A stretch of DNA of 64,000 bases from positions 124,001 to 188,000 of IMG/VR virus record IMGVR_UViG_3300020195_000009; one strand, 5' to 3'. The translations under genes were made by a program, and so were the position numbers. Of the stretch, positions 6,709-32,095 are shown in pieces (positions within the stretch are counted from its first letter, which is position 1; every line of letters starts with the position of its first letter). The notes under the pieces are model-generated. The model made no database searches. It was not told where the DNA came from and was given only the letters and a program-made list of their open reading frames with translations.

Positions 6709-6732
6709 TCAGGCGGGAGGGGACGGTACCAC

Positions 6733-6772
6733 AAAGCCGAAAGGCCACCCCGGTTTCCCAGGATGGCCTTTC
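6733..6772 (-). terminator. Intrinsic terminator after major capsid gene
   Basis: GAAAGGCCATCCTGG-GAAA-CCGGGGTGGCCTTTC hairpin followed by GGCTTT. Confidence 0.65.
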
Positions 6773-6800
6773 AACAGTGGCTTATTCAGCCTGCTTCGTG

Positions 6801-7673
6801 TCAGACGCGGGTGACGATCAACCGTGTGAGACCACGTGGGTTGAACGCCCCTATACCCACGTTCTCGAAACATGAGAAGCCGATTGTCCGGGCCTTCGGA
6901 TCGTCCGCGGAAAGCACGGTGAGTTCCGTGCGGACCGGGAAGCGGCCGAAGTTCTCCGGCTCGGCGCAGATGTACACGAACCCGGCTGGAACCAGCCGCG
7001 ACGTGATGATCTGAGCACCCCAGAGAGTGGCCTGGAGGCCAGTCTTGAGGAGGACTGCCTGGCTCTCGATGTCCAGGATGTCCCGACCGAACTTGCGGAT
7101 GTCCGCGTAGTCCGTCGCATTCATGTAGATACGAGCGACCCGGAGGTCGTGACGTTCCACTTCTGCGAAGGCGTCCGCGAGGACCGAGGGGCTGATCGGA
7201 GCCACGACGTTGATGTCGGGGTTCGTCTGGCCGGGGAGGGTGTCGAAGCCCGAGACAGCGATGCTGTCGAGGACGGCGAACACACGCTCATCTTCGGCTG
7301 CCTGGATCTGCGCCTTGGCGAGGTCCTGGCTGCGTTCGATGAGGTCGAAGCGGCGCTCCTTGATCTGCGTGAGCGGGATCTCCGGGTTCGAGGCGATCTC
7401 GAACAGCGGGAAGATCACGCGACGAGGCTTCTGGATGGCGAGAATGTTCTCGCCCTCTTCGCCGACGACGTAGGCCGTGACGTCCGGGTCCTTGTCGTAG
7501 ATCGGAAGGGCTCCGTCCGGGAGCTGCTCCACCAAGAAGGTCTTACGACCCACTGCCGTGTAGTCACGGCGAAGGCGAAGCGGTTGGATCATGGAAGCAG
7601 CGAGCTTCGCTCGGCCAGCGGCCGTTTTGATGTACTCGCTGATGATCTGCTGCTTGATGTCGTTGGATACCAT
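6801..7673 (-). CDS. Major capsid protein (HK97 fold)
   Basis: 290 aa with very strong codon bias, downstream of protease-scaffold-decoration genes. The segment LAASMIQPLRLRRDY...PIYD...FEIASNPEI...AAEDERVF resembles, from recall only, capsids of Bxz1/cluster-C-like large phages. Confidence 0.85.
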   Translation of the reverse strand: MVSNDIKQQIISEYIKTAAGRAKLAASMIQPLRLRRDYTAVGRKTFLVEQLPDGALPIYDKDPDVTAYVVGEEGENILAIQKPRRVIFPLFEIASNPEIPLTQIKERRFDLIERSQDLAKAQIQAAEDERVFAVLDSIAVSGFDTLPGQTNPDINVVAPISPSVLADAFAEVERHDLRVARIYMNATDYADIRKFGRDILDIESQAVLLKTGLQATLWGAQIITSRLVPAGFVYICAEPENFGRFPVRTELTVLSADDPKARTIGFSCFENVGIGAFNPRGLTRLIVTRV

Positions 7674-7696
7674 GTTCGTGCCTTTCTTCCTTCCGC

Positions 7697-8347: not shown

Positions 8348-8471
8348 TGAATGCGTCTCCTATGGGCGGGAAAGCGTTGGGGGTCTTCACATCTACATTT
8401 GCATCTAGGCAACCACCGAAGTGATTGAGAGAGTCACCCAATGAAGGGTGATTGAAGGATTATTGAAGACC

Positions 8472-8496
8472 GGAGGGCTTCAAGTTGAAGCCCTCC
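8472..8496 (-). terminator. Hairpin (probable terminator) after scaffold gene
   Basis: Inverted repeat GGAGGGCTTCAA/TTGAAGCCCTCC. Confidence 0.5.
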
Positions 8497-8502
8497 TAAT
8501 CC

Positions 8503-12473: not shown

Positions 12474-15400
12474 TCAGGGAGCGAGGGGACGGCCGTTCTC
12501 GGCCTTGCCTGTCTGGACCGCCTGCGACTGGTCATCCTTGTATTGACCCATGTAGGGCTCGTCCGAGTCCGTCTGCTTGGGGGCCGTGGGGGCGTTGAAC
12601 GTCGGCATGTACTTCTCATCCGAGTCCTGCTGGATGACCTTCGCAGACTTGAGGACTTCCACCTGGCGCTTGGCGAGAGACTCATCCCCGTAGGTCGCCT
12701 TCTCGATGTCATCGGCCGTCCGATCGAGATCGTTGACGATGTTCTTGGCGGTCTCGAAGTCCATCCCCCACTTCGTGTGGTTCTCCTGAATGTAACCGGC
12801 GACCTTGTCGAGCCGGTCCAGGATGACGTTGGCTTGCTCCTTGGCGAATTTGACGGTCATGGCGTTTCCCTCTGTCTCTTCCGTTGAGGAGGTCTTTCGG
12901 ACCCCTGGTTTGGTTCCCGAAGTGGCTTTCTCCACCTTGAACCCGAACTTCTTACCTACGTCTTGAAGGGCTTTGAAAGCCTTATCGATGTCCGCTTCGG
13001 GGACTTGAACCCAAACAAGGGTCTCCACACGAAGGCCTTCCTTCTCTTGATGGAAGGTGAGGAAGCCGCCGCCACGGGTGTCCACGACCCGGAGATTAAC
13101 GTCGTGCTCCTTACCGTCGTCACCTTCGGTCGGGATCCACGTCTTGTTGATGGCGTTGATCGTGTCGATGTTGAAGGGAACCGGCTTACGGGTGGGGACA
13201 AAGAGCACGGTGATCGTGTCCACGCCGTAACCGAAACCAGCCGTGTGGACCGTCAACAAGGTCTCGCCCGCAGGTTGCGAGGCCAGTTTGGCGAGCATCA
13301 TGTTGTACAACGGAGCGGAGATCGCTCCGTTGTACTTGCCATCCTCAGCTCGTTGAATCGCGAGGTCCAAAGCGGCTCGGAATCGAGCATCAGGAACCAT
13401 CCCTTCGACGGACTTCGACAGGATGGGGGACTTGAGCCAGTCCTTGGCGGCTGCCAAGAGAGTTCCAAAGTCACTCGGCCCGAGGTCTCGTTGGTGAACC
13501 TGATGCCACTCGGGGTACGAGGCAAACCCCTCGTGACCCTTTGGGTAAGGCTCAACGCCATGATAGATGGCCGTACGGACCGCTTGGCGAGCGTCATCGA
13601 TGGAAAGCGGAGGGGTGCCCATCTGCCAATTTCGGTCCCGATAAGAAGAATAGAGAGAAGCGACCCGTAACGAACGAAGCTCGTCAAATTGCTCCTGACG
13701 GGCCGCTCGCTCCGCCTTGGAGGGCTTACCTTCGTAACCAAGAGGCTTCACTGGAGGCTCCGGGGCGAGCGGGGGTTCAGGTTCAGGAACCTCAAAGGGT
13801 TTTGAGGGGGTCCGATAAGGATCTCCTTTGGCCAACTCCTTCTCATGCTTGATTTTCGCCTTAGTCCACTCGGTGTGCTCTCGTTCAAAGGCCCTGTAGG
13901 CCTTTTTCTGTTCTGCTTCCGCAGCTTTGAACTCACCAATAGACTTCTCGTACGCCTCACCTTCTGCTTGTTTGAGGAACTCCTGGACCTGAGCTTCCTT
14001 TTTGGGATCAAGCCCGCGTAGGGACTGACGGACCCGAACTCGGAAGACCATAGATGGGTCATCAAGCGCAGCCTTTACCTCGGCTGGGTAACGCTTACCT
14101 GCTTTGCGGATCATCTCCGTTGCAGCGGTTAGCTTGTTGGCTATTACTCTCGGGTGGTCCCGCTCGGAGATGACGTCGTTGGACTTTGGATCCAAGAAGC
14201 GCTCATGAGCGGCTCGGTAGTCCTCCCCTTGGAGGTTGGCTACCGCCACCATCTGCGTGTGGGGATCCAGCTCCTTAAGGTTGGATAGGAGCTTATTTCG
14301 CTCTTGGTCCTTCAACGCCTCGCGTTTGGTATTTCTTGAGACCAAGCCAAACCTCTCATCAGGATCCTCACTAACTTGAGGGAACCCGGCAGATGCTTTA
14401 CTAAAGAGGTTTTGAGCTGCCTCTTTAGCTTTGGACTCTCGTTCTTCAGGTGGGAGTGAAGCAGAGGTCAGCGATAGATGAGCGAGGCTGGGTGCTAGGT
14501 GACTGGGAACACCAGACGATTTGAGGGCGTGTGAAACACGCATTTGGGTCGTAACACTAGCCGCTACAACTGCTACCCGATGCTCTTGTACAGCTTGAGC
14601 CTGCTCTTCTTTAGACAGCTCCTCAAATGGCTTTTCAATGCCGTCCGAAGCCTTCCCCTTCTTAGGGAGGGTCTTCACCAGAGCGGGATCCGTGGTGAAT
14701 GAAGCCCCACCATTTTGAATCTCATCTTGCACACTTCGAGGAGCTGGGAGGGACTTGAAGTCTAGGTAGTTCGCAACGACAGCCTTTACATCCTCTGGGT
14801 GCATCAACCTTAATTGAACACGGACCTGAGGAGGTAGGTCTGTGGTAAAGAGTAACTCTGTAGCCTCATGTATCTGTTGCTGAGTGGGGGGCTTTCGCTT
14901 CGGCGGGGGGAAGTCTTGGGCGCTCGTAGGCTTCTTCTCGGGAGCCTTCTCCTTCTCAGGGGCCTTCTCACCTTCAGGAGTCTTCTCACCTTCAGGAGTC
15001 TTCTCGGGGGTTTTCTCTTCCTCGGGGGGTTTCTTGGTGTCGACCTCAGCGGGAGCTTCCTGAGGTCTCTTCGTCCGCTGGGCTTTAGCTACAGGCTTTG
15101 GAACAAGCTCAAGAGCCTTCTTGAGGTCACCAAGGGTTTTGATTTCAGGTGGGAAATCTGCCTTGGGGAAGACCTCTTTTACAGGCTTGCCTGGGTTGCT
15201 ATCGGCGACAGCTTGCAACGCGGTAGCTGGATTTGAAAACGTACCTATGGCGCTCTTTAGGGCCGGGTCGTTCTTCGCTCGCTCTTGAAGCTCTTCCCCT
15301 CCGATACGAGCATCCAATTCCTTGATTGGCTCGTAGGGTGCCTTCGGCTCAGGGTTGAACTTGTCTCGCTTCTTGGGGGCCTCTTGTTTCGATTTAGGCT

Positions 15401-16400
15401 CCTCGGGCTTCTTGGGGGCCTCTTGTTTCGCAGGTCCAGGCTTTTTTTCAGTGTCTTCTGCTGCGGGATCTTCGGGTTTCTCAGTCCCAGGCTTGGGCTC
15501 TTCCTTGGGCTTCTCCTCTTCCTTGGGCTTCTCCTCTTCCTTGGGCTTCGGACCCATCAACTTAGGTGGTGGCTTCCCGTCTCTCTCCGCATCCTCGACC
15601 GCCTCAAAGTGATCATTGATCCACTTCGGGATCGACTTCGACCATGTGACCGCATCCCCCACGGTTTTGAACTTGGCAAGCTCAGGGTGACCTTCGAGCC
15701 CCTTCACCTCCGAAATGGGTGTGTCCTGCGGTAGATCGGAGATCGTTGACAGAGCCTTTTGAAAGACAGGATCCTTCTGGGTCTTTTCAAGAATCCCCTG
15801 GACGAAATCAAATTCCTTACGGTGCTCAGGAGCTAGGGGATCCGGCTCAGTTCCAGGTTTTTCCTCGCGGGTCTCTGGCTTACCCCCCTCGGGCTTATCT
15901 TCAGGCTTCTTATCTTCAGGCTTGACCGGCTTGTATCGGGAGGGGTTGTTCTTCGCCGTCGTCTCGGGAACCGAGACGACCTTTTTCTCCTCCGAATCGA
16001 AGACCGAGACGTACTTCTTGGGACCGGATTGAGCCGGCTTGCGCTCTTTGAGGTCTTTGCGCTTCTGGGTCCGCTTCTCTTTACGTCGCTGTTGGAACTT
16101 CGGGTTGGACTTAGCCTCCAGGTAGCGGCTCACCACCCGGTCCTCGATGGCCGGCTCCAGAAACCGATCCACAACCCTAGCAATCAGACCAACGGAACCC
16201 CCGACCCTTTTGTAATTGAGGGATAGGTCTGGGTCGCTCTTGGTGTCCGGGTCCCCCTCTACATCTGGATCTCGATCCGGCTGCATATCGTCACGACGAC
16301 GATCCCTGCGAGGGGGCTTCTTCTTGGGTTGAGGACGGACAAGGCGCTCCGCCTCATCATCCTCTTTCTCCCCATGCGTCTTCGTGGCCAGAAAATCCAT
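12474..16400 (-). CDS. Large (~1308 aa) putative internal head protein with P/E/K-rich repeats
   Basis: Long ORF between portal and protease genes. ATG at 16400 is 18 nt from a late motif (the track uses GTG at 16406). Two RVVxR[FY]L motifs near the N-terminus. Confidence 0.7.
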   Translation of the reverse strand: MDFLATKTHGEKEDDEAERLVRPQPKKKPPRRDRRRDDMQPDRDPDVEGDPDTKSDPDLSLNYKRVGGSVGLIARVVDRFLEPAIEDRVVSRYLEAKSNPKFQQRRKEKRTQKRKDLKERKPAQSGPKKYVSVFDSEEKKVVSVPETTAKNNPSRYKPVKPEDKKPEDKPEGGKPETREEKPGTEPDPLAPEHRKEFDFVQGILEKTQKDPVFQKALSTISDLPQDTPISEVKGLEGHPELAKFKTVGDAVTWSKSIPKWINDHFEAVEDAERDGKPPPKLMGPKPKEEEKPKEEEKPKEEPKPGTEKPEDPAAEDTEKKPGPAKQEAPKKPEEPKSKQEAPKKRDKFNPEPKAPYEPIKELDARIGGEELQERAKNDPALKSAIGTFSNPATALQAVADSNPGKPVKEVFPKADFPPEIKTLGDLKKALELVPKPVAKAQRTKRPQEAPAEVDTKKPPEEEKTPEKTPEGEKTPEGEKAPEKEKAPEKKPTSAQDFPPPKRKPPTQQQIHEATELLFTTDLPPQVRVQLRLMHPEDVKAVVANYLDFKSLPAPRSVQDEIQNGGASFTTDPALVKTLPKKGKASDGIEKPFEELSKEEQAQAVQEHRVAVVAASVTTQMRVSHALKSSGVPSHLAPSLAHLSLTSASLPPEERESKAKEAAQNLFSKASAGFPQVSEDPDERFGLVSRNTKREALKDQERNKLLSNLKELDPHTQMVAVANLQGEDYRAAHERFLDPKSNDVISERDHPRVIANKLTAATEMIRKAGKRYPAEVKAALDDPSMVFRVRVRQSLRGLDPKKEAQVQEFLKQAEGEAYEKSIGEFKAAEAEQKKAYRAFEREHTEWTKAKIKHEKELAKGDPYRTPSKPFEVPEPEPPLAPEPPVKPLGYEGKPSKAERAARQEQFDELRSLRVASLYSSYRDRNWQMGTPPLSIDDARQAVRTAIYHGVEPYPKGHEGFASYPEWHQVHQRDLGPSDFGTLLAAAKDWLKSPILSKSVEGMVPDARFRAALDLAIQRAEDGKYNGAISAPLYNMMLAKLASQPAGETLLTVHTAGFGYGVDTITVLFVPTRKPVPFNIDTINAINKTWIPTEGDDGKEHDVNLRVVDTRGGGFLTFHQEKEGLRVETLVWVQVPEADIDKAFKALQDVGKKFGFKVEKATSGTKPGVRKTSSTEETEGNAMTVKFAKEQANVILDRLDKVAGYIQENHTKWGMDFETAKNIVNDLDRTADDIEKATYGDESLAKRQVEVLKSAKVIQQDSDEKYMPTFNAPTAPKQTDSDEPYMGQYKDDQSQAVQTGKAENGRPLAP
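15501..15549. repeat. 18-bp tandem repeat (KPKEEE) inside the large ORF
   Basis: ttccttgggcttctcctc x~2.7; similar 18-bp EK[TA]PE[GK] units at ~14930-15010. Confidence 0.7.
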
Positions 16401-16436
16401 GCCCACCCCGGCTGGGCGAAAAGACGAGTATCGGTC

Positions 16437-18245
16437 CTAGAACCGGCCTTCTTCTGCGGCGGCTGGTTCTTCTTTGACGCTAAGGTTGAGGTACTTGGCG
16501 ATCTTGTCCATGATGTCGGTCTTTTCCGCGAGCATCCGGCCGACCTCCCCATAGATCCCGCGAATGACCTCGTTGAACACGGAGTCGTTGACCGAGAACA
16601 TGTCTCGCTCGATCTTCTCTTTCGTATCCGCTGGGTCGATGTTGAACATCTCCAGAATGAGGTCGATGGAGATGCTCCCCTTCTGGTACAAATTGAAGAG
16701 GGCGTCGTAGGTGTCCTGGCTGTCCCGAAGGGCCAGACGAGTGAAGGAGAGCCTTGGGATGAGGACAACCTCATCCCCCCAATCATCCTTCTCCACGAAC
16801 CCCTTGCGTCTTGCTACGGGCTTGAAGAGGTACTCCTCCACATACTCCTGGAGCATCTCTCTGAAGAGCAGATAGCGGGTGTTGAGGACCTCCAGCTTGA
16901 CTCGGTCTCCGGAGAACGTGCTCTCTCCGTTGAGAAGACTCTCGGTCACACCAAGGCCTGCGAAGAGCTGCTTATCCGTGATCTCGTATTCACCAGACAG
17001 ATCAAGGAGACGGTCACGGGCTCCGATCTCTTCCCAGTGGACCTCGTAGTTGGTGACGATCGAGTAGTCCGGGTCCACGAGAGCCAAGTCGACCTGCTCA
17101 CGAAGATCATCCGTATCAATGTCCGAAAGGTTCTCACCCCACACGAGACGCTTGGGCGTCATCGCTCGGTCGGCGATGAGCGTCTGGGCCTGCCGGAGCT
17201 TCTCTCGGTAGTACAGGATACGAAGACAACGATCGAGGAGGCTGGCCCCAAGCTCCTCACCAGCTCCACGTCGGGCCGTGAGATGGTAACAGAACGAACC
17301 CTCATCAGGATCCGTCCCAAGTGGGATCAACTGGCCAGATTCGATGTAGTCCCGCACTTCTTGGGGGATTTCTTCGACCATCCGCTGGGCCTTATCGTCC
17401 CCGATTTTGGCCTGCTCGATGAGGGCTCGGTCCCGGTCTGACGGGATTAGGTCGAGTTGAACCTTGTCCGTGAAGCTAAAAGAAGCGAGCTTGACCTGGT
17501 CGATAGGGAGGATGATGAGCTTGTCCCACCCCTTGTAATGCTGCTGATAGTACGCCAGCTCAAGGTCTTCTCGATCGTTAAGTTCCGTGATCGACTCTTC
17601 GACTTCCTCCACCCCGTTGCCGTCGTCATCGAGGGAAGACTTGACGTTCTTTTCGATCTTGTGCCCAACCTCGGGCGGTACGTCTACGGTCCCATCCTCA
17701 GCAAACAAGAACACGTTTCCATCGAGATGGTAGTGGTGAGCCCCCGTGATCAGCCGTTGAAACAGCTTGATCCGCTTGCACATCTTCTCAAAAAACGAGA
17801 GAATGTAACGGCCGTAATCTTCGGGGCTCTTGAACCTATCCGGGTGTGTCCGAGGGGTCGGTTTCGCTAGGCGAACCTTGGAGAGCGGAAGCTCTGTATG
17901 TAGGTCGATGGCCTGCCCTACAATAGGGTCTGTGTTGTAGAAGTGGCGATAAATCTCTCGCTTCTCACGAAGCGATTGGGGCAGTTGGAGGAAGTCTGTC
18001 GAGAGTTGGGGCGAGAAAAACGCCCCCTGACCCGACAATGTTGTGTGTCCACCACCGGCCCCACCCGTTGGAAACGCCCCGGCCGTCTTGTTCTGGCTCT
18101 GGCTGGCTCGACGAGCCATACGCTCCTTTTCGGTCAAATTGGTGATCCCACCCTTTGCCGAATAGGGGGCATGCAAGTAACGACCGATCTGCGTGTTCGC
18201 TAGAACGATGCCGTTTCGAGCATTGGTGAACCGATCAGCGGGCAC
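16437..18245 (-). CDS. Portal protein
   Basis: 602 aa in the head module; YRHFY..DPIVGQAIDLH, GNVF, G.SLL.R...L, LFAGLGV.ESLL.G segments typical of large-phage portals. Confidence 0.8.
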   Translation of the reverse strand: MPADRFTNARNGIVLANTQIGRYLHAPYSAKGGITNLTEKERMARRASQSQNKTAGAFPTGGAGGGHTTLSGQGAFFSPQLSTDFLQLPQSLREKREIYRHFYNTDPIVGQAIDLHTELPLSKVRLAKPTPRTHPDRFKSPEDYGRYILSFFEKMCKRIKLFQRLITGAHHYHLDGNVFLFAEDGTVDVPPEVGHKIEKNVKSSLDDDGNGVEEVEESITELNDREDLELAYYQQHYKGWDKLIILPIDQVKLASFSFTDKVQLDLIPSDRDRALIEQAKIGDDKAQRMVEEIPQEVRDYIESGQLIPLGTDPDEGSFCYHLTARRGAGEELGASLLDRCLRILYYREKLRQAQTLIADRAMTPKRLVWGENLSDIDTDDLREQVDLALVDPDYSIVTNYEVHWEEIGARDRLLDLSGEYEITDKQLFAGLGVTESLLNGESTFSGDRVKLEVLNTRYLLFREMLQEYVEEYLFKPVARRKGFVEKDDWGDEVVLIPRLSFTRLALRDSQDTYDALFNLYQKGSISIDLILEMFNIDPADTKEKIERDMFSVNDSVFNEVIRGIYGEVGRMLAEKTDIMDKIAKYLNLSVKEEPAAAEEGRF

Positions 18246-18249
18246 TTAT

Positions 18250-18753
18250 TTATACCTCTTCCCCGTACAAATCATCCACTTCGCCAGGGGTAACCAAGTC
18301 CGGAGACAAGGAGACCGGAGGGGAGGGATGGTCAGGGCCAAACAGAGCGGAAAGAGGATCTACTTCTACCTTCTTGCCTTCTTTGGCAGCCTTGGCTTCT
18401 TTGCGAGCTTGTTTTACCTGCTCTTCTTGAGCCAGATCAGCCATGGTTCGCTTGGCCTCAGCCAAGACACGATCAAACGCAGCGGTCCGTTTCAACCCCT
18501 GCGAGACCATGCCCGTAAGGCGTTTTCCCACGTTGGCCAAGTTGAGGTACGTCGGCGTTGCGTAGTCGGGGGTTCCACGACGGACCGTGTGGTACAGGAC
18601 CTCGTAAACCTTATGGAGGCGCTCCGCAGCAACAGACATCTCCTTCTGGAGACGCCGGCCCTCAACACAAAGCTCATCGGGGGTCATCCGCTCAACGGGC
18701 ACCCCCGCTCTGGACCCCGAACGAGTCGGGAGAATTTCATCTAGGTTTGGCAT
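18250..18753 (-). CDS. Hypothetical helical protein
   Basis: 167-aa ORF tightly packed between neighbours. Confidence 0.6.
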   Translation of the reverse strand: MPNLDEILPTRSGSRAGVPVERMTPDELCVEGRRLQKEMSVAAERLHKVYEVLYHTVRRGTPDYATPTYLNLANVGKRLTGMVSQGLKRTAAFDRVLAEAKRTMADLAQEEQVKQARKEAKAAKEGKKVEVDPLSALFGPDHPSPPVSLSPDLVTPGEVDDLYGEEV

Positions 18754-18758
18754 TTGAT

Positions 18759-19271
18759 TTACATAGAAGTCTGAATTCCCAAGAAGTTTCGATTACTTGT
18801 CTTGGGAATTTGAGCCACGAACCCGGTGAAAAAGGCGGGGGCTAGAGGGTGCCCGGATAGGGTCATCTCGTCCTCCTTCGTCCACAAACCACGAAGTGAT
18901 AGATAGAGTATGTCCTGGACTTGGTAGACGAGCGGGACGAGGGGTCCCCCAAGACGGGAGGCATACGTGTACTGCTCGTAGCTGCTCGTAGAGATGAGGC
19001 AGCCTCCCGAGAACATCGTGGCGTAGCGATAGTGGGGTTGCTGGCGGGTGATCGCCGTGAAGCGGTCCCCCTCTTCATCCGAGCCCCAAACAAGGAAACC
19101 CCCGTAGAGACCCTCTGAGTAGGTGACCAACCGTTCATCGCCCGTTGACCCTGCCCATTGAACACCTTGACCCCCAGGCCAACCACCCGTGACCATAGCT
19201 TGAGACACCGCCACGGTCTGAGTGTCGCCTTTGAAAAAAACGACGCAGTCTCGGGAGCGTAGGATCTCCAT
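18759..19271 (-). CDS. Decoration-like protein, tandem paralogue 3
   Basis: RSRDC...KGD...GGWPGGQGVQW...YSEGLYGGFLVWGSDE shared with the two upstream ORFs. Confidence 0.7.
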   Translation of the reverse strand: MEILRSRDCVVFFKGDTQTVAVSQAMVTGGWPGGQGVQWAGSTGDERLVTYSEGLYGGFLVWGSDEEGDRFTAITRQQPHYRYATMFSGGCLISTSSYEQYTYASRLGGPLVPLVYQVQDILYLSLRGLWTKEDEMTLSGHPLAPAFFTGFVAQIPKTSNRNFLGIQTSM

Positions 19272-19273
19272 GG

Positions 19274-19801
19274 TCAGATTGAGGTCTGGAGGGTGATGAA
19301 AAAGTTGTTGTCAGCCGACGGAGCCTGCACCACGCTCGCTACAAAGAAGTTGTTGGGGGCTCTAGGGTCGGCCGTGATCGTCCATTCGTCTTCGCGAGTG
19401 AAAAAACCTCGAAGGGAAAACACGACCCGTTCCCCAACGACGTAGTTGTTTTCGACGAGCGGCCCACCAAGCCTGGAGGCGTAAGTGTAACGCTCGAACG
19501 TTCTCGTAGAGATGAGCCAACCGCCAGCGCAAAGGGTTCCGAATCCGTAGAGGGGTTGATTGCCCGTGAGGGAGGCGAATTTGTCGGAGTCTTCATCAGA
19601 CCCCCAGAGAAGAAAGCCCCCATAGAGCCCATCGGAATACGTGACGATGAACTCATCCAAGGAGGAGTCGATCCACTTGACTCCTTGCCCACCTTGCCAA
19701 CCCCCAGTCTTCATCGCCTGGGATACAGCAACGGGGTACGCATCACCCTTGAAAAGGACGTAGCAGTCTCGCTCACGGGGGAAGCTTTTGATGAAGGCCA
19801 T
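19274..19801 (-). CDS. Decoration-like protein, tandem paralogue 2
   Basis: RERDC...KGDAYPV...GGWQGGQGV...YSDGLYGGFLLWGSDE. Confidence 0.7.
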   Translation of the reverse strand: MAFIKSFPRERDCYVLFKGDAYPVAVSQAMKTGGWQGGQGVKWIDSSLDEFIVTYSDGLYGGFLLWGSDEDSDKFASLTGNQPLYGFGTLCAGGWLISTRTFERYTYASRLGGPLVENNYVVGERVVFSLRGFFTREDEWTITADPRAPNNFFVASVVQAPSADNNFFITLQTSI

Positions 19802-20316
19802 CAGATGCTCACCTGAATTCCCATAAAGAATTCAGTCGAGGCGCTGGGGATCTGTGACACGAATCCGATGAAGTAGCTGTTGGAGCCTCTTGGGTCGCCT
19901 GAGAGCGTCCACTCATCTTCGCGGGTCCAGTAACCCCTTAAACTGAAAACGAGTCGATCACTTGGGGAGTAGACGATCTGAACTAGCGGGCCAGCTTGTC
20001 TGGAGGCGTAGGTGTACTTCTCGTAACTTCGAGTAGAGATATGCCAACCCCCGGCTCCACATGTGGCAAACCTGTAGAACGGTTGGCTTCGGGTTGTAGC
20101 AGTGAACTGATCCGCAGATTCATCCGAACCCCAAAGCATAAATCCTGCGTAGAAGCCGTCCGAGTAGGTGACGAGAAACTCGTCTTTCAGCGGGGGGGCC
20201 CATTGAACCCCTTGGCCCCCTTGCCACCCACCGACAGACATCGCCTCAGAGATCGTGACCGGATAGGCGTCTCCTTTCACGAGAATTATGCAATCTCGGC
20301 TCCTGGGGAGTTCCAT
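19801..20316 (-). CDS. Decoration-like protein, tandem paralogue 1
   Basis: RSRDC...KGDAYPV...GGWQGGQGVQW...YSDGFYAGFMLWGSDE. Confidence 0.7.
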   Translation of the reverse strand: MELPRSRDCIILVKGDAYPVTISEAMSVGGWQGGQGVQWAPPLKDEFLVTYSDGFYAGFMLWGSDESADQFTATTRSQPFYRFATCGAGGWHISTRSYEKYTYASRQAGPLVQIVYSPSDRLVFSLRGYWTREDEWTLSGDPRGSNSYFIGFVSQIPSASTEFFMGIQVSI

Positions 20317-20317: not shown

Positions 20318-21388
20318 TCAAGCCGACTCCGTCTCCTGTTTGCGGCCCGGCATCTTGCTCCAAACCGTCACGACGGTCTTGAGTAGTTCGTTGTGAATGG
20401 GATCCCCATTGAGGAACTTCTCCCAACTACCCCCACTCTGACGGAAGACCGACCTCATCACTTTGAAGTCGGTCTCTTCTGTAACGGTATCTTCCGACAC
20501 CATGTGATCCACAAGTTGACGGATGACGCGATCCCCAAAATTCAAAGGAACCTCAGGCGGGCAATCGAAGGAAGCTGCCTTCTCGTTCAACTTCTCGATG
20601 ACCGAGCCGTCATGAAGGTAAGCTTCCTCCATGGAAGGCACGAGGTACTGACTACGAAGCGTAGACGCCTCGTGCCCTACCGCTTCGGCAGCCCCTTCGA
20701 TGGCCTTCTTGAACTCGGCCTTGAGGATCTTGTCCTTCTCTTTGCGACCGGCTGGAAGCTTCGGACCCCCTGACCGAATCTTCCTCAGGCGCTCTTGGAC
20801 CTCCGTGTTCGCGTGAAGACCCCGGATGTCCTTGGCCGTGATGTCGAAGTCGGTCAGGTAGGCGTTGACTTCTTTCGCTCCCACGCACCCATCATCGTGG
20901 GAGAAGATGCAGGTCTCGCCCCCCTCCACAGAGTCGTAGGCCTTGCGGAGCGCCTTGAGGATCTGGCCGTCCGAGACCTTTTTCTCGTGCTTGACTCCAG
21001 ACTTGCCAACGTACTTGACCGTTGCTGTCCCCTTGCCGAACGACAAGTGACGCTTCTGCCAGCCTGTCACCCCAAAGTGGCCCTCATCGGCGGACCCGTC
21101 GTTTCCGACTCGCTCGTAGGTGTGGTCAATCAAGGCAACCGCAAGAGCCGTCAGCTTGGTGGACAGGTCCTTGGAACCCATGTCGGATTTGACTTTAGTT
21201 CGGAGCTTCCCCATCGATTGACGAAGCTTCTCGACACGATTGGCCTTCTCGTTGTTGCGGTTCGCGATCTGACGATCGCTATACTCGTAGACCGTCATGT
21301 CCTCACCGGACTCGGTCTTGATCTTCTTCTTGGACTTGTACCTAGCCACAACGCGAAGGGCTATCGGGTCTAGCTGGGGAATCCTCAT
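20318..21388 (-). CDS. DNA topoisomerase IB (poxvirus/bacterial-type catalytic core)
   Basis: Full catalytic pentad: ERVGN (R), GKSG (K), AKDIR (R), VGH (H), RSQYL (Y). Confidence 0.88.
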   Translation of the reverse strand: MRIPQLDPIALRVVARYKSKKKIKTESGEDMTVYEYSDRQIANRNNEKANRVEKLRQSMGKLRTKVKSDMGSKDLSTKLTALAVALIDHTYERVGNDGSADEGHFGVTGWQKRHLSFGKGTATVKYVGKSGVKHEKKVSDGQILKALRKAYDSVEGGETCIFSHDDGCVGAKEVNAYLTDFDITAKDIRGLHANTEVQERLRKIRSGGPKLPAGRKEKDKILKAEFKKAIEGAAEAVGHEASTLRSQYLVPSMEEAYLHDGSVIEKLNEKAASFDCPPEVPLNFGDRVIRQLVDHMVSEDTVTEETDFKVMRSVFRQSGGSWEKFLNGDPIHNELLKTVVTVWSKMPGRKQETESA

Positions 21389-23394
21389 CGTGTTCTCCCC
21401 AAGGGCTTTACAAGACGATCCCGGTGGACCCCGTGTTGACGCATCCGAGCCATCTGGAAGTGCTGCAAGGACCTCGGCCCACCACTCTGCCGTGGGTCAT
21501 TAGGGTTCCTCGGGGCCGTGATCTTCATGGTGCTGATCCGCTCCATTGAGAGCCAAATGGCTCGAATGAGAGCGTCGGATACATCGTCATGAGCCCCGCT
21601 GATCTGCGGCGCCTCCACGACAATCTGGTTACGTGCCGTCTGCTTGGCTTGGAGGCTCAGCATCTCTTCAATGAGAGGAGAATGCTTGGATTGCGACTCA
21701 CCCACCTTGGGCAGCGGGTAGTCGTAGAGGATCACTCGCTTGTCGAAGATGAGAAGCTTCGCCGCCTGGAACATCCGGCTTGTCGCATCACGGTTGTAGA
21801 ACTCACTCTTGAACTGCTTTAGGCCCTTCTTGTGGAGGGCCTCCTCCAAAGGGAGCCCATTCCAACGATCGAACGATCCGGCTGTGATATAGAAACGTTT
21901 CGTGAGGAGAACGATCCACTTGGCGATCTCCTCGAAGTCCAAACGCTCCGCCATCTCCAGCGTCTTTGCGTAATCACATAGAGGGTTCGTGAGGTGCGGG
22001 TTGGACTCCTTCCACGGGACCCCGGCGTACCAAGCCTCGTGGTAATCAAGGATGATCTTCGGACCCTCGGTATGCGTAATCGCAATCGCGGTCCCGTCTC
22101 CTATGAGCCCAACGTCGATCCCCATTTGGTGAGGGAACCTAGGCGGGCCGTACGTTTTGGGCCGTAGGTCTGGGCGAACGCATTCGATGAGGTCGGTCTC
22201 TCGTTCAATCCAACCTCGAACACGATCGGAGAACAGAGCCCCATGCTCCGTCATGAAGACCGTCGGGTCCTCATGGTACTTCTCACGGTAGTAGCTCGTT
22301 GGGATGGTCGGGTTGACCTCCCACGTCGGAGCCTGAATGACGAGCATGTTCTCCGAGCCGGGACCCCGACTCATTCCAAGGTGGAACAGCTCGTAGAACT
22401 TACCAGCCTTGTTCAAGGGAGACGAAATGCAAATGACGCGGGCTTCGGACTGAGTCTCCGATCCGTGAATAGGGAGTCCCGTGTCGAGGTCCTTAGCGGA
22501 GAAGGCAGCCACGGACGGAGTGATAGCGTCGTAAATGTCCTTAGCGCTGGACTTACCTTTATCCTGAAAGTGGGCGATCTCGTCCAGGATGATGACGATG
22601 TTACCAGAGCCTCGAAGGCCCTTTGAAATGCTCGCCTTGAAGGTAACCCGGATACTCGCCTTACCGTTGAACGAGGTGAACTTTCCGTCCGTATGTCGGA
22701 CTGTAGGACCGTAACGCTCGATATCATAAGGGGTTCGGAGCTGAACGTAGGAGAGTGTGTTGTTGGCGATGTACGGTTGGAAGAACTCGCACTTCGCCAT
22801 GTGCGAAGTCACGTCATTAAAGAGAAGGCCTGCTTGGTCCTTATCGGTAGCGACCGAGATGATTTGAATGCGGTTGCCGTTTGGGAGCCCGTAGTACTCC
22901 TGGGGGTTACCAAGAGAGAGCAGGCGGTACAGCTCGTAGCTAGCGAAAACAGCGGACAATGTCGTCTTGCCAGCCCTCCTACCGATGGGAAGCGTGAGCT
23001 GACGACGAAGATGGTCTTGTTCCCCGATGTTGCAACGACCCTCGTTGTAGAGGTAGCTCAGGTACTCCTTCTCCGTGAAAGTGTAGAGCGTTTTTGTGTT
23101 GAACATGTCCGAGATCCGAATCCTTCGGGTCTCGTCTTCTGGAAGCTTATCGTCAAGAGGCAGGTGGTAGTACAGCTTCACGATGAAGCGTTGTACCGGG
23201 AACAACCTCATATTGAGGCCCCAGGCAGACTCAACGTAGTTTAGAACGTTGAAGATACGGGTGGTCCGGCCGCTAGATCCAACAGAGGCTAGATCCCCAT
23301 TACCCGACTGTTCATCAGAGATGACCCGAGCACGATGCCCGGCACTCCGAATCAGATGGGAAATGCTTGACGATGACTTTTGCTCCCGAGCCAC
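21385..23394 (-). CDS. terL: Terminase large subunit
   Basis: Walker A GRRAGKT, Walker B IIILDE, coupling motif ISSP, RNase H-like nuclease GIDVG...DGTA and HDDVSDA. Confidence 0.92.
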   Translation of the reverse strand: MAREQKSSSSISHLIRSAGHRARVISDEQSGNGDLASVGSSGRTTRIFNVLNYVESAWGLNMRLFPVQRFIVKLYYHLPLDDKLPEDETRRIRISDMFNTKTLYTFTEKEYLSYLYNEGRCNIGEQDHLRRQLTLPIGRRAGKTTLSAVFASYELYRLLSLGNPQEYYGLPNGNRIQIISVATDKDQAGLLFNDVTSHMAKCEFFQPYIANNTLSYVQLRTPYDIERYGPTVRHTDGKFTSFNGKASIRVTFKASISKGLRGSGNIVIILDEIAHFQDKGKSSAKDIYDAITPSVAAFSAKDLDTGLPIHGSETQSEARVICISSPLNKAGKFYELFHLGMSRGPGSENMLVIQAPTWEVNPTIPTSYYREKYHEDPTVFMTEHGALFSDRVRGWIERETDLIECVRPDLRPKTYGPPRFPHQMGIDVGLIGDGTAIAITHTEGPKIILDYHEAWYAGVPWKESNPHLTNPLCDYAKTLEMAERLDFEEIAKWIVLLTKRFYITAGSFDRWNGLPLEEALHKKGLKQFKSEFYNRDATSRMFQAAKLLIFDKRVILYDYPLPKVGESQSKHSPLIEEMLSLQAKQTARNQIVVEAPQISGAHDDVSDALIRAIWLSMERISTMKITAPRNPNDPRQSGGPRSLQHFQMARMRQHGVHRDRLVKPLGRTR

Positions 23395-23397: not shown

Positions 23398-24006
23398 TCA
23401 CCTCAGAGCGTTCGTGGCTCGGTCCTCCCAGCCTTCCATCACCGAAGCAAATCGGTTGAAGAAGAGGTTCATCACTTCCTGAGGGAGAGTCTCTTGCGCA
23501 ACTTCACGCATGGTCTCCACCCAAAGGGTGAACAGCTTTTGCATCCGCTCGCTGCTCAAGTTGACGGAGGCCGAATCCAGCTCTTTGATCTTCAACTCGA
23601 TGTCAGCGATCTTCTTGAGGGCTTCGATGCGTCTGGTCGAGACCTGACCCGTTTCCTTTCCGCGCTTCGCAACTTCGAGGCGCTCGAAGTTGAGGCTAGC
23701 CGCTTCGGACGCGACCTCCTTCTTGATGAGGTAGAGGATTTCTAGGGGTGCCCCCTTAGCTTCGATCTTCTGTACAAGAGGGTCGGAGGCGATGAACTTC
23801 TGGCGCTCCCGGACCATCTCAGCATGGTATTCGAGGTCACTCGTTGTTGGCTTTCGCTCGATCTTACGGGGGCGACCTACCCCTCGCTTGACGCTGGCAA
23901 GTTGGTGACCCTCCGAAGTGTTCGGAGCATCCTGTTCCGGGAGGAGACGCAGGACTGCGTCGACACGCTCTTCTTCGGAGTTGGGGTTTGTTCCGTCCTT
24001 CTTCAT
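23398..24006 (-). CDS. Putative terminase small subunit
   Basis: Helical 202-aa ORF immediately upstream of terL; AT-hook-like KRGVGRPRK. Confidence 0.5.
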   Translation of the reverse strand: MKKDGTNPNSEEERVDAVLRLLPEQDAPNTSEGHQLASVKRGVGRPRKIERKPTTSDLEYHAEMVRERQKFIASDPLVQKIEAKGAPLEILYLIKKEVASEAASLNFERLEVAKRGKETGQVSTRRIEALKKIADIELKIKELDSASVNLSSERMQKLFTLWVETMREVAQETLPQEVMNLFFNRFASVMEGWEDRATNALR

Positions 24007-24013: not shown

Positions 24014-24403
24014 TCACTTCACAGGCTTGGTGCCGCCGCCCCCACCTGTCTCGATGAGATATTGGGAGAGGTTCTTCACTGTAGCATAGCCTTTGTCTTT
24101 GGGAATTTGCTTCTCAATGACTTTGGCAAGGTCTTTACCCGTCTCAGCCAAATTGCGAACACTCGTTTGATTCGGCTTGGGGACGAACACATCCTCAGGT
24201 CGGATGTCACGACGATTGGGTGAGACGGTTTCGTCGTGACCATCACCCATGGGCTTGCCGTGCTCTTTGAGGATCGAACGATCAATACCCTTGGGGCGGT
24301 TCACGGGCTTGACCATGTCCTTGTCCTTCTTCCGTTGACCAGGGGGTTGGTCACTTTGAAGGAATCTGGCAGCCACCCGGAGGATGAGAACATCGTCGAT
24401 CAT
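24014..24403 (-). CDS. Small basic protein with N-terminal LRVAARFL motif (putative internal head protein)
   Basis: 129 aa; motif shared with the topoisomerase and the 1310-aa protein. Confidence 0.6.
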   Translation of the reverse strand: MIDDVLILRVAARFLQSDQPPGQRKKDKDMVKPVNRPKGIDRSILKEHGKPMGDGHDETVSPNRRDIRPEDVFVPKPNQTSVRNLAETGKDLAKVIEKQIPKDKGYATVKNLSQYLIETGGGGGTKPVK

Positions 24404-30049: not shown

Positions 30050-32095
30050 TCACTCGGAAAAGGCGAGTTGTTCTTGTCGCTTCGCAAATCCTCGTGAAGC
30101 GGTCTGAAAGAAGGGTTCCACTATCGAGTCGGCTTGGATGCTGAGCCCACCGATGACTTCGGAGGCGATCTTTGCATCAGGACTCGGAGCGATCTCATCA
30201 AACGAGAGATCGTCGCGTAGCTGCATGAGATTCAAATTGAGGCGGACCTGAGCTTCGGCCGCACGGATCTTCGCGTACTGCCCGGCGGTGATGCCAGACA
30301 AGTTGGATGCGAAGACCTCATCAACTGAACCGTAGTTTTTCAAGAGCGCCGTCAGAACTTTCGTAGGTACCCGGCCACCGACACCCGGTACCTCATCTGA
30401 ATCGTCCCCGAGTAACGCCCGAAGTTGGACCATGCGTTCGGGTGTGACTCCATATTCTTCCACAACTTTGTCCCGGTCGTAAAGGGTCTCCTGTCGATTT
30501 CCGACCTTGGGTGATAGCACGATGTCAGTCAATGTCACCAACTGTAAGAAGTCTTGGTCCGTAGAGAGGATGACGTTCCTCTGACCTTTGAGCTTGCCTC
30601 GGACAAGACAAGCGATGACGTCATCCGTTTCTTCCTCGGCGTTGAATGCTTGGGTGACACCCAGGAGGGGGAGGATGTTTCGCAGGCGACTCATCTGGCT
30701 CTCAGGGCCAACAGAGGCACCATTCAAGGACCCGTTGGCCGCTCGCTCGGCTGCTCGCTTCTCACGCCGCTTAATCTTGTACCCCTCAAAGAGGTTGATA
30801 CGACGCTGCGGGGATCCGTCCCAAACAACGTAAATTGAGGCATTTGCAAATCTCTTCTTGAGACTAGCCAGGCTTTTCAAGAACCCAAACACGAGGGAGG
30901 TGGGGTTCCCTTCTGCGTCCGTGAGGGGTTTCTTCATGGCCCCGAGGGCATGAGAGACTCGGTACGCGAGGTTGTGCCCATCGATGATGACGTTCTCGAA
31001 CATGTCCGATCTCCCTGTTAGCGCCTCAACGTTACCCACGTTACGGGCCAGCCCATTCAATCTCTGTACGATGTCTTGGAGCCACTGAGACTCAAGCATT
31101 TTTGCTTCTACTTGAGCGTTGAGTGTCGGTAAGGTGGCGAGAGCTGGGGCCGCTTGGAGGTATTGAAACCAAGCTGGACCTCGTTCTATCAACGAGTCCA
31201 TTTGATGCACAAGGCCGTATTTTTCAGCGACCTTGTCCATCACTGGAGTGGGCTTTACTTGGAGACCGAGCTTACGACTACGATCCAACCAACCACCAAA
31301 GAGTTGAACCCCTTGGTGACTATGCAACAAAAGGGTGATTGGAGGAGGGCCTGAGGGGAGCGTCATCTGACGGCGGATGTGTTTGACGCGATCCAACCGT
31401 ACAAGGCCTAGCTCGATATTACCGAGGTCTCGGACGGCCTGCTCGACCTCCCTAAACCCAGAGGGAACCCACGACAGAATGGGTTGAACCAACCGACTCC
31501 ACTCTCGGATCCGTTCGATCTTCGTCATGAACGGAGAGAATGTGGGAAGATCCGACTGGTCCTTCGAGACGAATCGGAGAAACGACCTGGGGAGCGTGAC
31601 TATGGCTTCTTTGGATCGAAGCTTGATATAGACCTGAACTGAATCGGTCTCTGGGATCTCCTCGATGATCCGGCCGTTGATGCCCTTGTAGGGGCCGTTC
31701 ATCACCTGAACTTCATCCCCTACTTCAATACCTTGTTCTGTTTCAACGTGTATTTGACGACGCATCTTGTCGATGTCCACGTCTCGAACAGTCGCCATCT
31801 CACGGTAGGTGGTCTTTCGGTCCAAAGCCCGAGCTACCGTCAGAACCGAAGCGACGTACCGCGTACCCTCAAGCCGCATATACGCAGAGTCAGGGAGGGT
31901 CCTACGTACAAAGACGTAGTTGTCGATCAGCTTGTGGATGACACGGCTATCTCCGACGATGGACACGGAGGCAGGGATGAAAATCTCGACCGTCTTGTCT
32001 CGGAATACACGAGCTAGAGCGGAGGCGAGGACCTCTGGGTCTTCGTCTTCTCCTTGAGGGGAAAGCTCTAAGACGACCCAATCACGCGTCGCCAC
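30050..32095 (-). CDS. NusG/RfaH-like (NGN+KOW) domain fused to a PolA/T5-FEN-type 5'-3' exonuclease
   Basis: N-terminal WVVL, IFIP, NYVFV and KOW IEVGDEVQVMNGPYKGING; C-terminal IIDGHN, VWDG, ETDDVIA, STDQD, GDDSD and H3TH motif. Confidence 0.85.
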   Translation of the reverse strand: MATRDWVVLELSPQGEDEDPEVLASALARVFRDKTVEIFIPASVSIVGDSRVIHKLIDNYVFVRRTLPDSAYMRLEGTRYVASVLTVARALDRKTTYREMATVRDVDIDKMRRQIHVETEQGIEVGDEVQVMNGPYKGINGRIIEEIPETDSVQVYIKLRSKEAIVTLPRSFLRFVSKDQSDLPTFSPFMTKIERIREWSRLVQPILSWVPSGFREVEQAVRDLGNIELGLVRLDRVKHIRRQMTLPSGPPPITLLLHSHQGVQLFGGWLDRSRKLGLQVKPTPVMDKVAEKYGLVHQMDSLIERGPAWFQYLQAAPALATLPTLNAQVEAKMLESQWLQDIVQRLNGLARNVGNVEALTGRSDMFENVIIDGHNLAYRVSHALGAMKKPLTDAEGNPTSLVFGFLKSLASLKKRFANASIYVVWDGSPQRRINLFEGYKIKRREKRAAERAANGSLNGASVGPESQMSRLRNILPLLGVTQAFNAEEETDDVIACLVRGKLKGQRNVILSTDQDFLQLVTLTDIVLSPKVGNRQETLYDRDKVVEEYGVTPERMVQLRALLGDDSDEVPGVGGRVPTKVLTALLKNYGSVDEVFASNLSGITAGQYAKIRAAEAQVRLNLNLMQLRDDLSFDEIAPSPDAKIASEVIGGLSIQADSIVEPFFQTASRGFAKRQEQLAFSE

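Follow-up and report, generated by a model that had tools for sequence, protein, structure and literature searches.

The window analysed here is a 64,000-nucleotide stretch (positions 124,001 to 188,000) of the IMG/VR virus record IMGVR_UViG_3300020195_000009, a 286-kb fragment of a huge phage which is rated 60% complete and whose closest GenBank phage is a 485-kb uncultured phage. On the minus strand of the window, a gene of 356 codons with an ATG start lies between the genes for the large terminase subunit (TerL) and the portal protein, its start overlapping the TerL stop in an ATGA (ATG at 21388–21386, TGA at 21387–21385), with the portal gene four genes further downstream (Table 1). The gene encodes a protein with a type IB topoisomerase (TopIB) core fused to a small C-terminal domain. 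An earlier note, made from the sequence alone, had described an intact R-K-R-H-Y pentad, a short leader with LRVVARY in place of the usual N-terminal domain, a C-terminal extension after EKAAS, the ATGA overlap with terL and a TCGTCTTGT motif 21 nt upstream. The observation itself was confirmed, as its sequence-level statements checked out.

Table 1. Features of the TopIB locus and the surrounding head genes (window coordinates, all on the minus strand)
Position	Feature	Basis
6801..7673	Major head protein	phrog_2522 1.6e-51; PF05065
9997..11664	Prohead (head maturation) protease	phrog_18299 4e-12; phrog_2774 6e-23
12474..16406	1310-aa protein, likely remainder of the ancestral polyvalent protein; RVVSRY at residue 90	N-terminus is the linker that follows the TopIB domain in polyvalent relatives; no Pfam or PHROG hit
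16437..18245	Portal protein	phrog_16240 1.9e-26
18250..20316	Four small ORFs between TopIB and portal, the first three being tandem paralogues	59–60% identity between paralogues; no Pfam or PHROG hit
20318..21388	TopIB gene (356 aa)	ORF; PF01028 E=6.2e-22; predicted TopIB fold
20321..20563	Residues 276–356, predicted 4-helix domain	Homologous to a stand-alone ~85-aa protein encoded directly after TerL in relatives
20579..21337	Residues 18–270, beta-hairpin and TopIB catalytic core	Alignment to D. radiodurans TopIB; invariant columns; model and fold search
21338..21358	Residues 11–17, LRVVARY, one instance of the RVAARY-type motif	Enrichment and conservation of the motif
21385..23394	Large terminase subunit (TerL)	phrog_2 2e-20; phrog_17415 2e-19
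21410..21418	TCGTCTTGT, candidate regulatory motif inside the TerL coding end	Only exact copy in the window
23398..24006	Conserved 202-aa gene immediately upstream of TerL in both arrangements, at the position of a small terminase	Synteny only; no family hit
24014..24403	129-aa protein	LRVAARF at residues 8–14

Sequence and predicted structure of the topoisomerase

The protein matched Pfam Topoisom_I (PF01028) over residues 43–245 with 78.5 bits, against a cut-off of 23.7. An AF2 model (mean pLDDT 85.6) was closest in a Foldseek search to the TopIB of Deinococcus radiodurans (3m4a, E 4e-11) and variola virus (3igc, E 4e-11), followed by human Top1, with TopIB structures scoring from 4e-11 to 8e-6, whereas tyrosine recombinases scored only about 1e-3 (XerH, Cre and integrases 2e-3 or worse). 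In a phmmer alignment, R93 (ERVGN), K129 (GKSG), R189 (AKDIRG), H239 (VGHE) and Y248 (QYLVP) aligned with the R-K-R-N-Y catalytic positions of the D. radiodurans enzyme (DraTopIB), and all five were invariant in 40 locus homologues and in a 42-row alignment. The pentad, the profile match and the predicted fold hence all place the protein among type IB topoisomerases.

Only 47 residues precede the catalytic core, compared with about 90 in DraTopIB, and in the model residues 1–14 are disordered and followed by a single beta-hairpin (residues 19–35), where type IB enzymes have an N-terminal beta-sheet domain that completes the C-shaped clamp around DNA. This domain is an accessory feature, as the vaccinia catalytic fragment alone is active. 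The reading of LRVVARY as a short, cleavable leader replacing this domain was rejected, as residues 12–47 are conserved even when the TopIB domain lies more than 1000 residues inside a larger protein. Instead, it is one instance of a recurrent RVAARY-type motif marking module starts in these proteins, with 10 hits in 9 proteins of the 286-kb record compared with 0.71 in shuffled sequences, and 150 hits compared with 2.4 expected (60-fold) in 150 library relatives. Four of the nine motif proteins in the record lie in the 24-kb head block (binomial P = 0.005).

The C-terminal extension after EKAAS (residues 269–273) is real, and consists in the model of a disordered linker (272–282) and a 4-helix domain (284–344, pLDDT 81–93). 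It is a fused copy of a small protein which relatives otherwise encode separately, right after TerL. An HMM of this part hit small ORFs after TerL in nine related loci and, in a tenth, a longer open frame just after the TerL match (E 2e-12 to 9e-7), and the alignment was collinear from end to end (model pLDDT 85). Pfam and PHROG scans of the small protein gave no match, and an Atlas search gave nothing usable. A fold search of the C-terminal domain against 48,161 PDB chains gave a best Z of 5.3, below the noise level for helical bundles. Seven of the 50 listed entries were phage head-to-tail connector or adaptor chains (Z 3.7–4.5), which we regard only as a lead. An Atlas search with the whole protein without PF01028 returned nothing, and one with the tandem paralogue downstream returned only beta-rich, porin-like look-alikes with low shared-feature counts, treated as compositional.

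The core of the upstream motif, TCTTGTA, was enriched within 60 nt upstream of genes in the 286-kb record (8 observed, 1.6 expected), and five of these copies lie 15–20 nt from the start codon. Here, however, the motif lies inside the TerL coding end, and its conservation in relatives cannot be separated from conservation of the TerL residues HRDRLV, hence we rejected this conservation as evidence for a promoter. The late promoter proposed in the earlier note remains unsupported so far, with the motif a candidate only.

Genomic context in related phages

Random genomic position in relatives had been named beforehand as a result that would count against a head-related role. In 31 of 38 distinct related loci the TopIB lies in the head module, in one of two collinear arrangements, TerL-TopIB-portal or TerL-portal-TopIB-protease, across TopIB identities of 50–99%. 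The first arrangement is strictly conserved in 13 distinct TopIB domain sequences of this clade (the window and 12 loci). In most relatives, however, TopIB is not next to TerL but downstream of the portal. Seven distinct relatives carry the TopIB polyvalent gene outside the head module, beside RNase HII and macrodomain genes.

In the second, more distant arrangement TopIB is embedded in proteins of 700–2800 aa with partner domains including PolyA_pol (CCA/polyA polymerase), 2H, HAD_SAK_1, GNAT, NUDIX, PAP2, LPD1 and DUF5661. A search of the protein library gave 529 cluster representatives at E≤1e-30, and most of the top 150 were 500–3400 aa long with TopIB at variable internal positions. A domain census of 31 long representatives, out of 2171 library hits, and the 47 loci examined showed that the commonest fusion partners are RNA-end enzymes (in the 31 representatives: HAD_SAK_1, n = 6; PolyA_pol, n = 6; 2H, n = 4; RNA_ligase, n = 1). 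LPD1 occurred at the related locus L022 and in one library representative, whereas no LPD domain was found in the window protein, which comprises TopIB and one small domain only.

A conserved TKTxxE linker follows TopIB in these relatives, and the 1310-aa gene after the portal starts with the linker which follows TopIB in them. The direction of change, from an ancestral polyvalent protein to separate genes, rests on this linker, as a tree of the TopIB domain with the Xanthomonas phage protein as outgroup had an unresolved backbone and a very long outgroup branch, and no direction of transfer is claimed from it. No other topoisomerase, either type IA or type II, was found in the 286-kb fragment, although 40% of the genome is missing. 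In a search for expression evidence no RNA run was listed, the phage being an uncultured one from microbial-mat and sediment metagenomes, and no cultured close relative was found.

A putative capsid cargo

Our analysis suggests that the gene encodes a type IB topoisomerase predicted to be active, belonging to the head-module “cargo” proteins of a clade of huge phages, a reading in which we place a confidence of about 0.5. Such enzymes need neither ATP nor Mg2+, and use a tyrosine to nick, swivel and reseal DNA. In this view, the module was separated in this phage’s lineage from a giant polyvalent protein encoded between portal and prohead protease, the remainder being the 1310-aa gene, and was fused to the small conserved protein encoded right after TerL. 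The enzyme would be made together with head proteins, incorporated into the capsid and ejected with the ~0.5-Mb genome, and the RVAARY-type motif and/or the C-terminal domain may act as the loading or anchoring determinant. Once inside the cell it would remove torsional stress from the entering DNA and help the first transcription before any phage protein is made, much as poxvirus cores carry TopIB. The intact core and pentad, the head-module position, the polyvalent fusions, the match of the C-terminal domain to the small protein encoded after TerL, the post-TopIB linker at the start of the 1310-aa protein, and the motif enrichment are all shown by our analysis, whereas catalytic activity, late expression, incorporation into the capsid and ejection are inferred. 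For late expression with head genes, the inference rests only on the shared strand, the ATGA coupling to TerL and a candidate upstream motif.

The earlier note’s interpretation, of a late-made enzyme which is either packaged and ejected or relieves torsion during DNA packaging, was partly supported. The non-random placement and the giant polyvalent relatives favour the packaged and ejected branch, as polyvalent proteins beside portal and terminase genes are proposed to be packaged and injected (PMC5512222), however such packaging is itself mostly a prediction. The alternative that TopIB works as a swivel at the terminase-portal motor, tethered through its C-terminal domain and releasing the twist that accumulates when a ~0.5-Mb genome is pumped from a concatemer, without delivery to the next host, appears unlikely. 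The ATGA overlap suggests coupled translation with TerL, the C-terminal domain is a protein always encoded directly after TerL, and the arrangement is strictly conserved in this clade. However, the position of TopIB in most relatives, inside proteins with RNA-repair, GNAT and NUDIX domains that have no link to packaging, speaks against this, and no phage packaging motor is known to need a topoisomerase.

It is also possible, though we consider it doubtful, that this is an ordinary intracellular topoisomerase serving replication, transcription or recombination of the huge genome, with its place in the head operon and its fusions reflecting gene shuffling. The absence of another topoisomerase from the fragment means that it could be the phage’s general enzyme, the seven non-head loci are in keeping with this, and TopIB genes of cultured jumbo phages are currently read as DNA-topology genes (PMC7824862), with that of phiRSL1 lying among metabolic genes. 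Against this are the conserved position in two independent head-module arrangements, the repeated fusion into giant multi-enzyme proteins between portal and protease, and the RVAARY motif shared with other head-block proteins. Least likely is a nucleic-acid end-processing or counter-defence module, in which TopIB would act with its RNA-repair-type partners (HAD_SAK_1, 2H, CCA/polyA polymerase, RNA ligase) to cleave and join at ribonucleotides, RNA-DNA junctions or broken ends rather than relax supercoils. The RNA-end fusion partners and the RNase HII neighbours of the non-head loci would fit, and vaccinia TopIB can cleave at ribonucleotides and join RNA to DNA. However, domains of polyvalent proteins need not cooperate (PMC5512222), the window protein carries none of these partners, and the full DNA-relaxation pentad and core are conserved at 50–66% identity, as expected for a standard TopIB.

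How very large phage genomes survive and start up in the first moments after entry is poorly understood. A topoisomerase type that needs no ATP, conserved at 50–66% identity across hundreds of otherwise variable giant proteins and encoded with the capsid genes, points to a delivered “starter kit” with a topoisomerase at its centre. More speculatively, and unlikely on present evidence although of considerable interest if true, the RVAARY-type motif with its conserved linker would be a cargo-loading or processing signal directing TopIB and a changing set of enzyme modules into the capsids of a large clade of huge phages, comparable in logic to encapsulin cargo peptides. TopIB would then be the constant cargo because it acts on the genome itself, either swivelling the entering 0.5-Mb DNA, or being held covalently at a genome end and resealing or circularising it in the new cell without ATP. 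The analysis thus yields a recurrent motif that may be a capsid-loading signal, a conserved linker that may be a protease site, and a small TerL-adjacent protein that can carry an enzyme. If the motif loads cargo, it could be used to load proteins of choice into phage capsids.

Comparison with known systems

The protein shares its predicted catalytic-domain fold with bacterial and poxviral type IB topoisomerases (D. radiodurans 2f4q/3m4a; variola and vaccinia 3igc, 2h7f and 1a41; Foldseek E about 1e-11), and its catalytic positions match, with His at the fourth as in the pox and human enzymes, where the Deinococcus enzyme has Asn. It differs in showing only 19–22% identity, in the reduction of the ~80-aa N-terminal beta-sheet domain to one hairpin preceded by an RVAARY motif, in the extra C-terminal 4-helix domain, and in being encoded in a phage head module and, in relatives, inside giant multi-domain proteins.

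The relatives resemble the polyvalent proteins of phages and conjugative elements (Iyer et al. 2017, PMC5512222), which combine two to 15 unrelated effector or enzymatic domains in one polypeptide, in that they are 0.5–3.4-kaa proteins stringing together unrelated enzymatic domains (2H, GNAT, NUDIX, LPD1, a peptidase-like domain) and encoded beside portal and terminase genes, the context from which packaging and injection were predicted. A TopIB module is not part of the repertoire described there, the word topoisomerase occurring only in the reference list of that paper. Here TopIB is the constant module in every protein retrieved, though these were retrieved by TopIB.

TopIB proteins are also encoded by cultured jumbo phages (phiRSL1 ORF108, PaBG gp84, Lu11 gp197, Xanthomonas PhiXhv-15; phrog_23460). 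The window protein hit phrog_23460 (5e-7) and the Xanthomonas phage protein at 27% identity. Those proteins are 560–670 aa with a long N-terminal region, have no RVAARY motif and show no polyvalent fusions. The PaBG and Xanthomonas genes lie near head or connector genes, PaBG gp84 being beside virion protein gp83 and four genes from the major capsid protein gp80, whereas phiRSL1 ORF108 lies among metabolic genes (NAD and NUDIX) and not head genes. A DNA topoisomerase is reported in the phiRSL1 virion proteome (PMC7247149), and the original description (Yamada 2010) reportedly names topoisomerase IB as a virion protein in its abstract, however phiRSL1 also has a type II topoisomerase, so the virion enzyme may be either.

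Finally, the proposed role follows the concept of virion-packaged enzymes delivered at infection, such as the phage N4 virion RNA polymerase and T4 Alt and internal proteins (PMC5512222), in which an enzyme is made late, loaded into the particle and active before new gene expression. No sequence relation to T4 capsid-targeting peptides was seen, the candidate signal here being a different motif. For TopIB, poxviruses are the direct precedent and the only established one known, their TopIB being packaged in the virion core and aiding early transcription.

A type IB topoisomerase core between the terminase and portal genes

All genes in this part of the window lie on the minus strand. The ORF following the large terminase gene (356 aa, ATG start) matched Pfam Topoisom_I (PF01028) at E=6.2e-22, 78.5 bits against a curated cut-off of 23.7. 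An AlphaFold2 model built on 42 homologues (mean pLDDT 85.6) had its best PDB matches to the Deinococcus radiodurans and variola type IB topoisomerases (TopIB, E about 4e-11), followed by human Top1, with tyrosine recombinases following only at about 1e-3. The catalytic pentad named in an earlier note on the sequence is R93, K129, R189, H239 and Y248; in a phmmer alignment these residues fall on the catalytic R-K-R-N-Y positions of the Deinococcus enzyme, and they were invariant in every homologue examined. The ATG overlaps the TGA of the upstream gene, which is the large terminase (TerL, phrog_2 2e-20). The portal gene (phrog_16240 2e-26) follows after four small ORFs, and further downstream lie a 1310-aa protein, a prohead protease and the major head protein. 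The sequence TCGTCTTGT lies 21 nt upstream of the ATG and occurs once in the window. The observation made in the earlier note is therefore confirmed in all its sequence-level parts.

The window (bases 124001-188000) comes from a 286-kb IMG/VR virus record (G000) rated 60% complete. The closest GenBank phage is a 485-kb uncultured phage (52% identity to the TopIB), related contigs are mostly 100-510 kb, and DNA of this phage was found in microbial-mat and sediment metagenomes. It is a huge phage with no cultured close relative.

Coordinates of the features described (window positions unless a record is named; G000, the 286-kb record; L-numbers, loci encoding a relative)
Feature	Record	Position
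TopIB ORF	window	20318..21388
TopIB ATG	window	21388-21386
TerL TGA	window	21387-21385
LRVVARY codons (RVAARY-type motif)	window	21338-21358
129-aa protein with RVAARY-type motif	window	24014-24403
1310-aa protein with RVAARY-type motif	window	12474-16406
299-aa protein with RVAARY-type motif	window	807-1706
Further RVAARY-type motif positions	G000	4880-9513, 111665-112219, 218879-219094
Further RVAARY-type motif loci	L019-L045	
Conserved linker, start of the 1310-aa gene	window	16100-16406
Conserved linker, just after the TopIB domain	L024, L028, L032, L033, L041, L001	
RNase HII and macrodomain protein	G000	4228-4893 and 243907-244464
Three tandem paralogues	window	18759-20316
NusG/KOW-like and 5'-3' exonuclease protein	window	30050-32095
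Clamp loader	window	32082-33602
GGTGTA[AG], example upstream regions	window	5576-6049, 57192-57572, 63423-63941
TnpB/IS605-OrfB genes	L001 (485-kb GenBank relative)	2057-3358 and 5526-6809
GIY-YIG homing endonuclease	L001	12235-13095
Intein-containing polyvalent protein	L034	5141-13555
TopIB gene of PaBG (gp84)	KF147891	56209-57897
TopIB gene of Xanthomonas phage PhiXhv-15	L049	7119-9125

Position of the TopIB gene in related phages

We fetched 46 IMG/VR loci and one GenBank locus that encode a relative, and located TerL, portal, protease and other neighbours by tblastn and then by iterated profiles. These loci were found through peptides of the query and are biased towards its relatives; 38 of the TopIB domain sequences are distinct. 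Twelve loci plus the window (57–99% identity) are strictly collinear, with three upstream genes, TerL, TopIB, four small ORFs, portal, large protein, 254-aa gene and protease. Nineteen more distant loci (50–60% identity) have TerL, portal, then TopIB 1-5 kb further on, then the 254-aa gene and the protease. Seven distinct loci have no head gene within 10 kb. The position is thus far from random, a random position in relatives having been named beforehand as grounds for rejecting the interpretation, but it is not universal either.

In the loci without head genes, the TopIB polyvalent genes occur in a third conserved context (L016-L018, L022, L023, L026, L031 and L038), beside homologues of an RNase HII (PDB 5y9p, 1.5e-23) and a macrodomain protein (5e3b, 6e-51) of this phage. 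In the window's own genome, three RVAARY-motif proteins, one with a DnaJ domain, lie next to that RNase HII. An ordinary intracellular topoisomerase remains a possible but unlikely reading, and a survey of jumbo phages lists TopIB in phiRSL1, Lu11, PaBG and others simply as a DNA-topology gene (PMC7824862).

Of the small ORFs between TopIB and portal, three are tandem paralogues (170-175 aa, 59–60% identical) which are conserved in the close clade, are beta-rich and gave no family match, with one copy lying between TerL and portal in locus L048. Elsewhere in the window, a 681-aa protein next to a clamp loader combines an N-terminal NusG/KOW-like region (KOW 2e-5; phrog_6386 antiterminator 1.5e-7) with a 5'-3' exonuclease (PF02739 2e-26). 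In the 485-kb GenBank relative, two TnpB/IS605-OrfB genes flank TerL, one just upstream and one between TerL and portal, and a GIY-YIG homing endonuclease lies between TopIB and the protease.

TopIB as a domain of giant polyvalent proteins

In the distant arrangement and in the non-head loci, the open frame containing TopIB is mostly 700-2800 aa, with a few shorter (311-688 aa), and TopIB sits anywhere from the N-terminus to residue 1600. Pfam searches of these proteins found polyA/CCA nucleotidyltransferase, 2H phosphoesterase, HAD_SAK_1, GNAT, NUDIX, PAP2, LPD1 (large polyvalent-protein-associated domain 1), DUF5661 and an intein. In the 485-kb GenBank relative TopIB is fused to an N-terminal HAD_SAK_1 domain, whilst the 2805-aa polyvalent protein of locus L034 carries an intein with a LAGLIDADG endonuclease inside its polyA/CCA nucleotidyltransferase domain, together with 2H, TopIB and GNAT domains.

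An exhaustive search of 1.84 billion cluster representatives, which carry no genomic context, gave 2171 hits, 529 of them at E<=1e-30. Most of the best 150 are 500-3400 aa with TopIB at variable internal positions, yet the domain stays 54–66% identical to the window protein. A domain census limited to 31 long representatives found TopIB in all (by construction), HAD_SAK_1 (n = 6), PolyA_pol (n = 6), 2H (n = 4), DUF5661 (n = 3) and GNAT (n = 2 or more). RNA ligase (2.6e-33), a complete Fe/Mn superoxide dismutase, a Ham1-type nucleotide pyrophosphatase, PAP2, LPD1 and an ATLF-type metallopeptidase domain each occurred once; the RNA ligase, superoxide dismutase, Ham1-type and ATLF-type domains are unusual modules, seen fused to TopIB in library protein P0009 and others. 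An end-processing role together with the RNA-repair-type partner domains is improbable, and we regard it as the least likely of the readings considered.

This is the architecture and gene context of the polyvalent proteins of Iyer et al. 2017, which those authors propose are packaged in the capsid and injected (PMC5512222). In that paper, “topoisomerase” occurs only in the reference list. Full-text searches for TopIB together with jumbo phages, or for an injected or internal topoisomerase I of phages, found nothing relevant.

Anatomy of the window protein and a recurrent motif

The N-terminal segment, described in the earlier note as a short leader containing LRVVARY, is not a leader. Residues 12-47 (RVAARYKxKKK...TVYEYS...) are conserved even when the domain starts more than 1000 residues into a larger protein. 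In the model, residues 1-14 are disordered and residues 19-35 form one beta-hairpin, all that remains of the usual N-terminal domain.

LRVVARY is one instance of a recurrent motif, [RK][VILM][VAL][AS][RK][YFW] (“RVAARY”), which is 14- to 60-fold over-represented in the polyvalent and head-block proteins of this phage group. It occurs 10 times in nine proteins of the 286-kb record, against 0.71 in shuffles (maximum 4 in 200), and 150 times in the 150 library relatives, against 2.4 (maximum 6 in 100). About half of the occurrences examined in context (59 of 108) sit at the start of the TopIB domain, the others sit elsewhere in the same proteins, often after “(S)LNYK” and before charged linkers. 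Three further window proteins (129, 1310 and 299 aa) carry it, and four of the nine motif proteins of the record lie in the 24-kb head block (P=0.005). The motif is absent from the TopIBs of the cultured jumbo phages phiRSL1, Lu11 and the Xanthomonas phage. The suggestion of a head-protein motif in the earlier note therefore has substance, but as a motif that marks module starts; it could be a loading, docking or processing signal.

The extension after EKAAS is a separate, predicted 4-helix domain. A profile of this domain found an ~85-aa ORF located immediately after TerL in the distant-arrangement loci (E 2e-12 to 9e-7), and the alignment is collinear from end to end. The window gene is therefore a fusion of the TopIB module with this small post-TerL protein, for which our searches returned no family. 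A role as a swivel at the packaging motor is conceivable, although we consider it doubtful.

The 1310-aa protein after the portal begins with the conserved ~80-aa linker (ATKTxxE, an acidic stretch, PKKKPPR, DPD, LSLNYK, RVAARYL) that directly follows TopIB in the polyvalent relatives. On sequence alone, the TKTxxE part resembles the A/S/G-x-E prohead-protease sites of other large phages. The simplest history is that TopIB left the polyvalent gene and was joined to the small gene after TerL, however, a tree of the domain could not confirm the direction.

Candidate regulatory motifs

The heptamer TCTTGTA was found within 60 nt upstream of eight predicted genes of the record, against 1.6 expected, with genes called by simple ORF picking. 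In five cases it lies 15-20 nt from the start codon, including the gene just downstream of the major head protein. This is compatible with a regulatory element, however, upstream of TopIB it lies in the last codons of TerL and is kept only in relatives that also keep the TerL residues HRDRLV. The late promoter proposed in the earlier note remains a guess. The most enriched heptamer upstream of genes across the record was GGTGTA[AG], often CGGTGTAG/A (GGTGTAA: 10 observed against 0.7 expected). In about half of the cases it lies 8-11 nt before the start codon, and it is a candidate promoter or translation-initiation signal of this phage.

Possible packaging and delivery of the enzyme

Our analysis establishes a conserved, apparently active TopIB, its head-module context, its kinship with polyvalent proteins and its fusion to a TerL-adjacent protein. 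DNA relaxation by this protein, its co-expression with head proteins, its loading into the capsid and its ejection with the DNA are inferred. On ejection, an enzyme that needs no ATP or Mg2+ could relieve twist in a 0.5-Mb genome and support the first transcription, as in poxvirus cores. The interpretation in the earlier note, of a late-made enzyme that is packaged and ejected or that relieves torsion during packaging, is partly supported, and we put the probability of the packaged-and-ejected reading at about 0.5.

There is some outside support from cultured jumbo phages of other lineages. A DNA topoisomerase is reported in the phiRSL1 virion proteome (PMC7247149, citing Yamada et al. 2010), and phiRSL1 encodes a TopIB (ORF108), but it also has a type II enzyme; the original study reportedly names topoisomerase IB. 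ORF108 lies among NAD and NUDIX genes, an exception to the proximity to structural genes seen in the two other phages. In PaBG the TopI gene gp84 lies beside virion protein gp83 and four genes from the major capsid protein gp80, though gp84 was not among the 14 Coomassie-visible bands. In Xanthomonas phage PhiXhv-15 the TopIB gene lies about 3 kb from the head-tail connector gene.

TopIB in a phage, packaged enzymes and polyvalent proteins are each already known. What appears undescribed is that TopIB is the constant module of a very large family of head-module polyvalent proteins of huge phages, that this module has an apparently reduced N-terminal domain, that a recurrent short motif marks module starts, and that in this lineage the module was moved onto a small TerL-adjacent protein.
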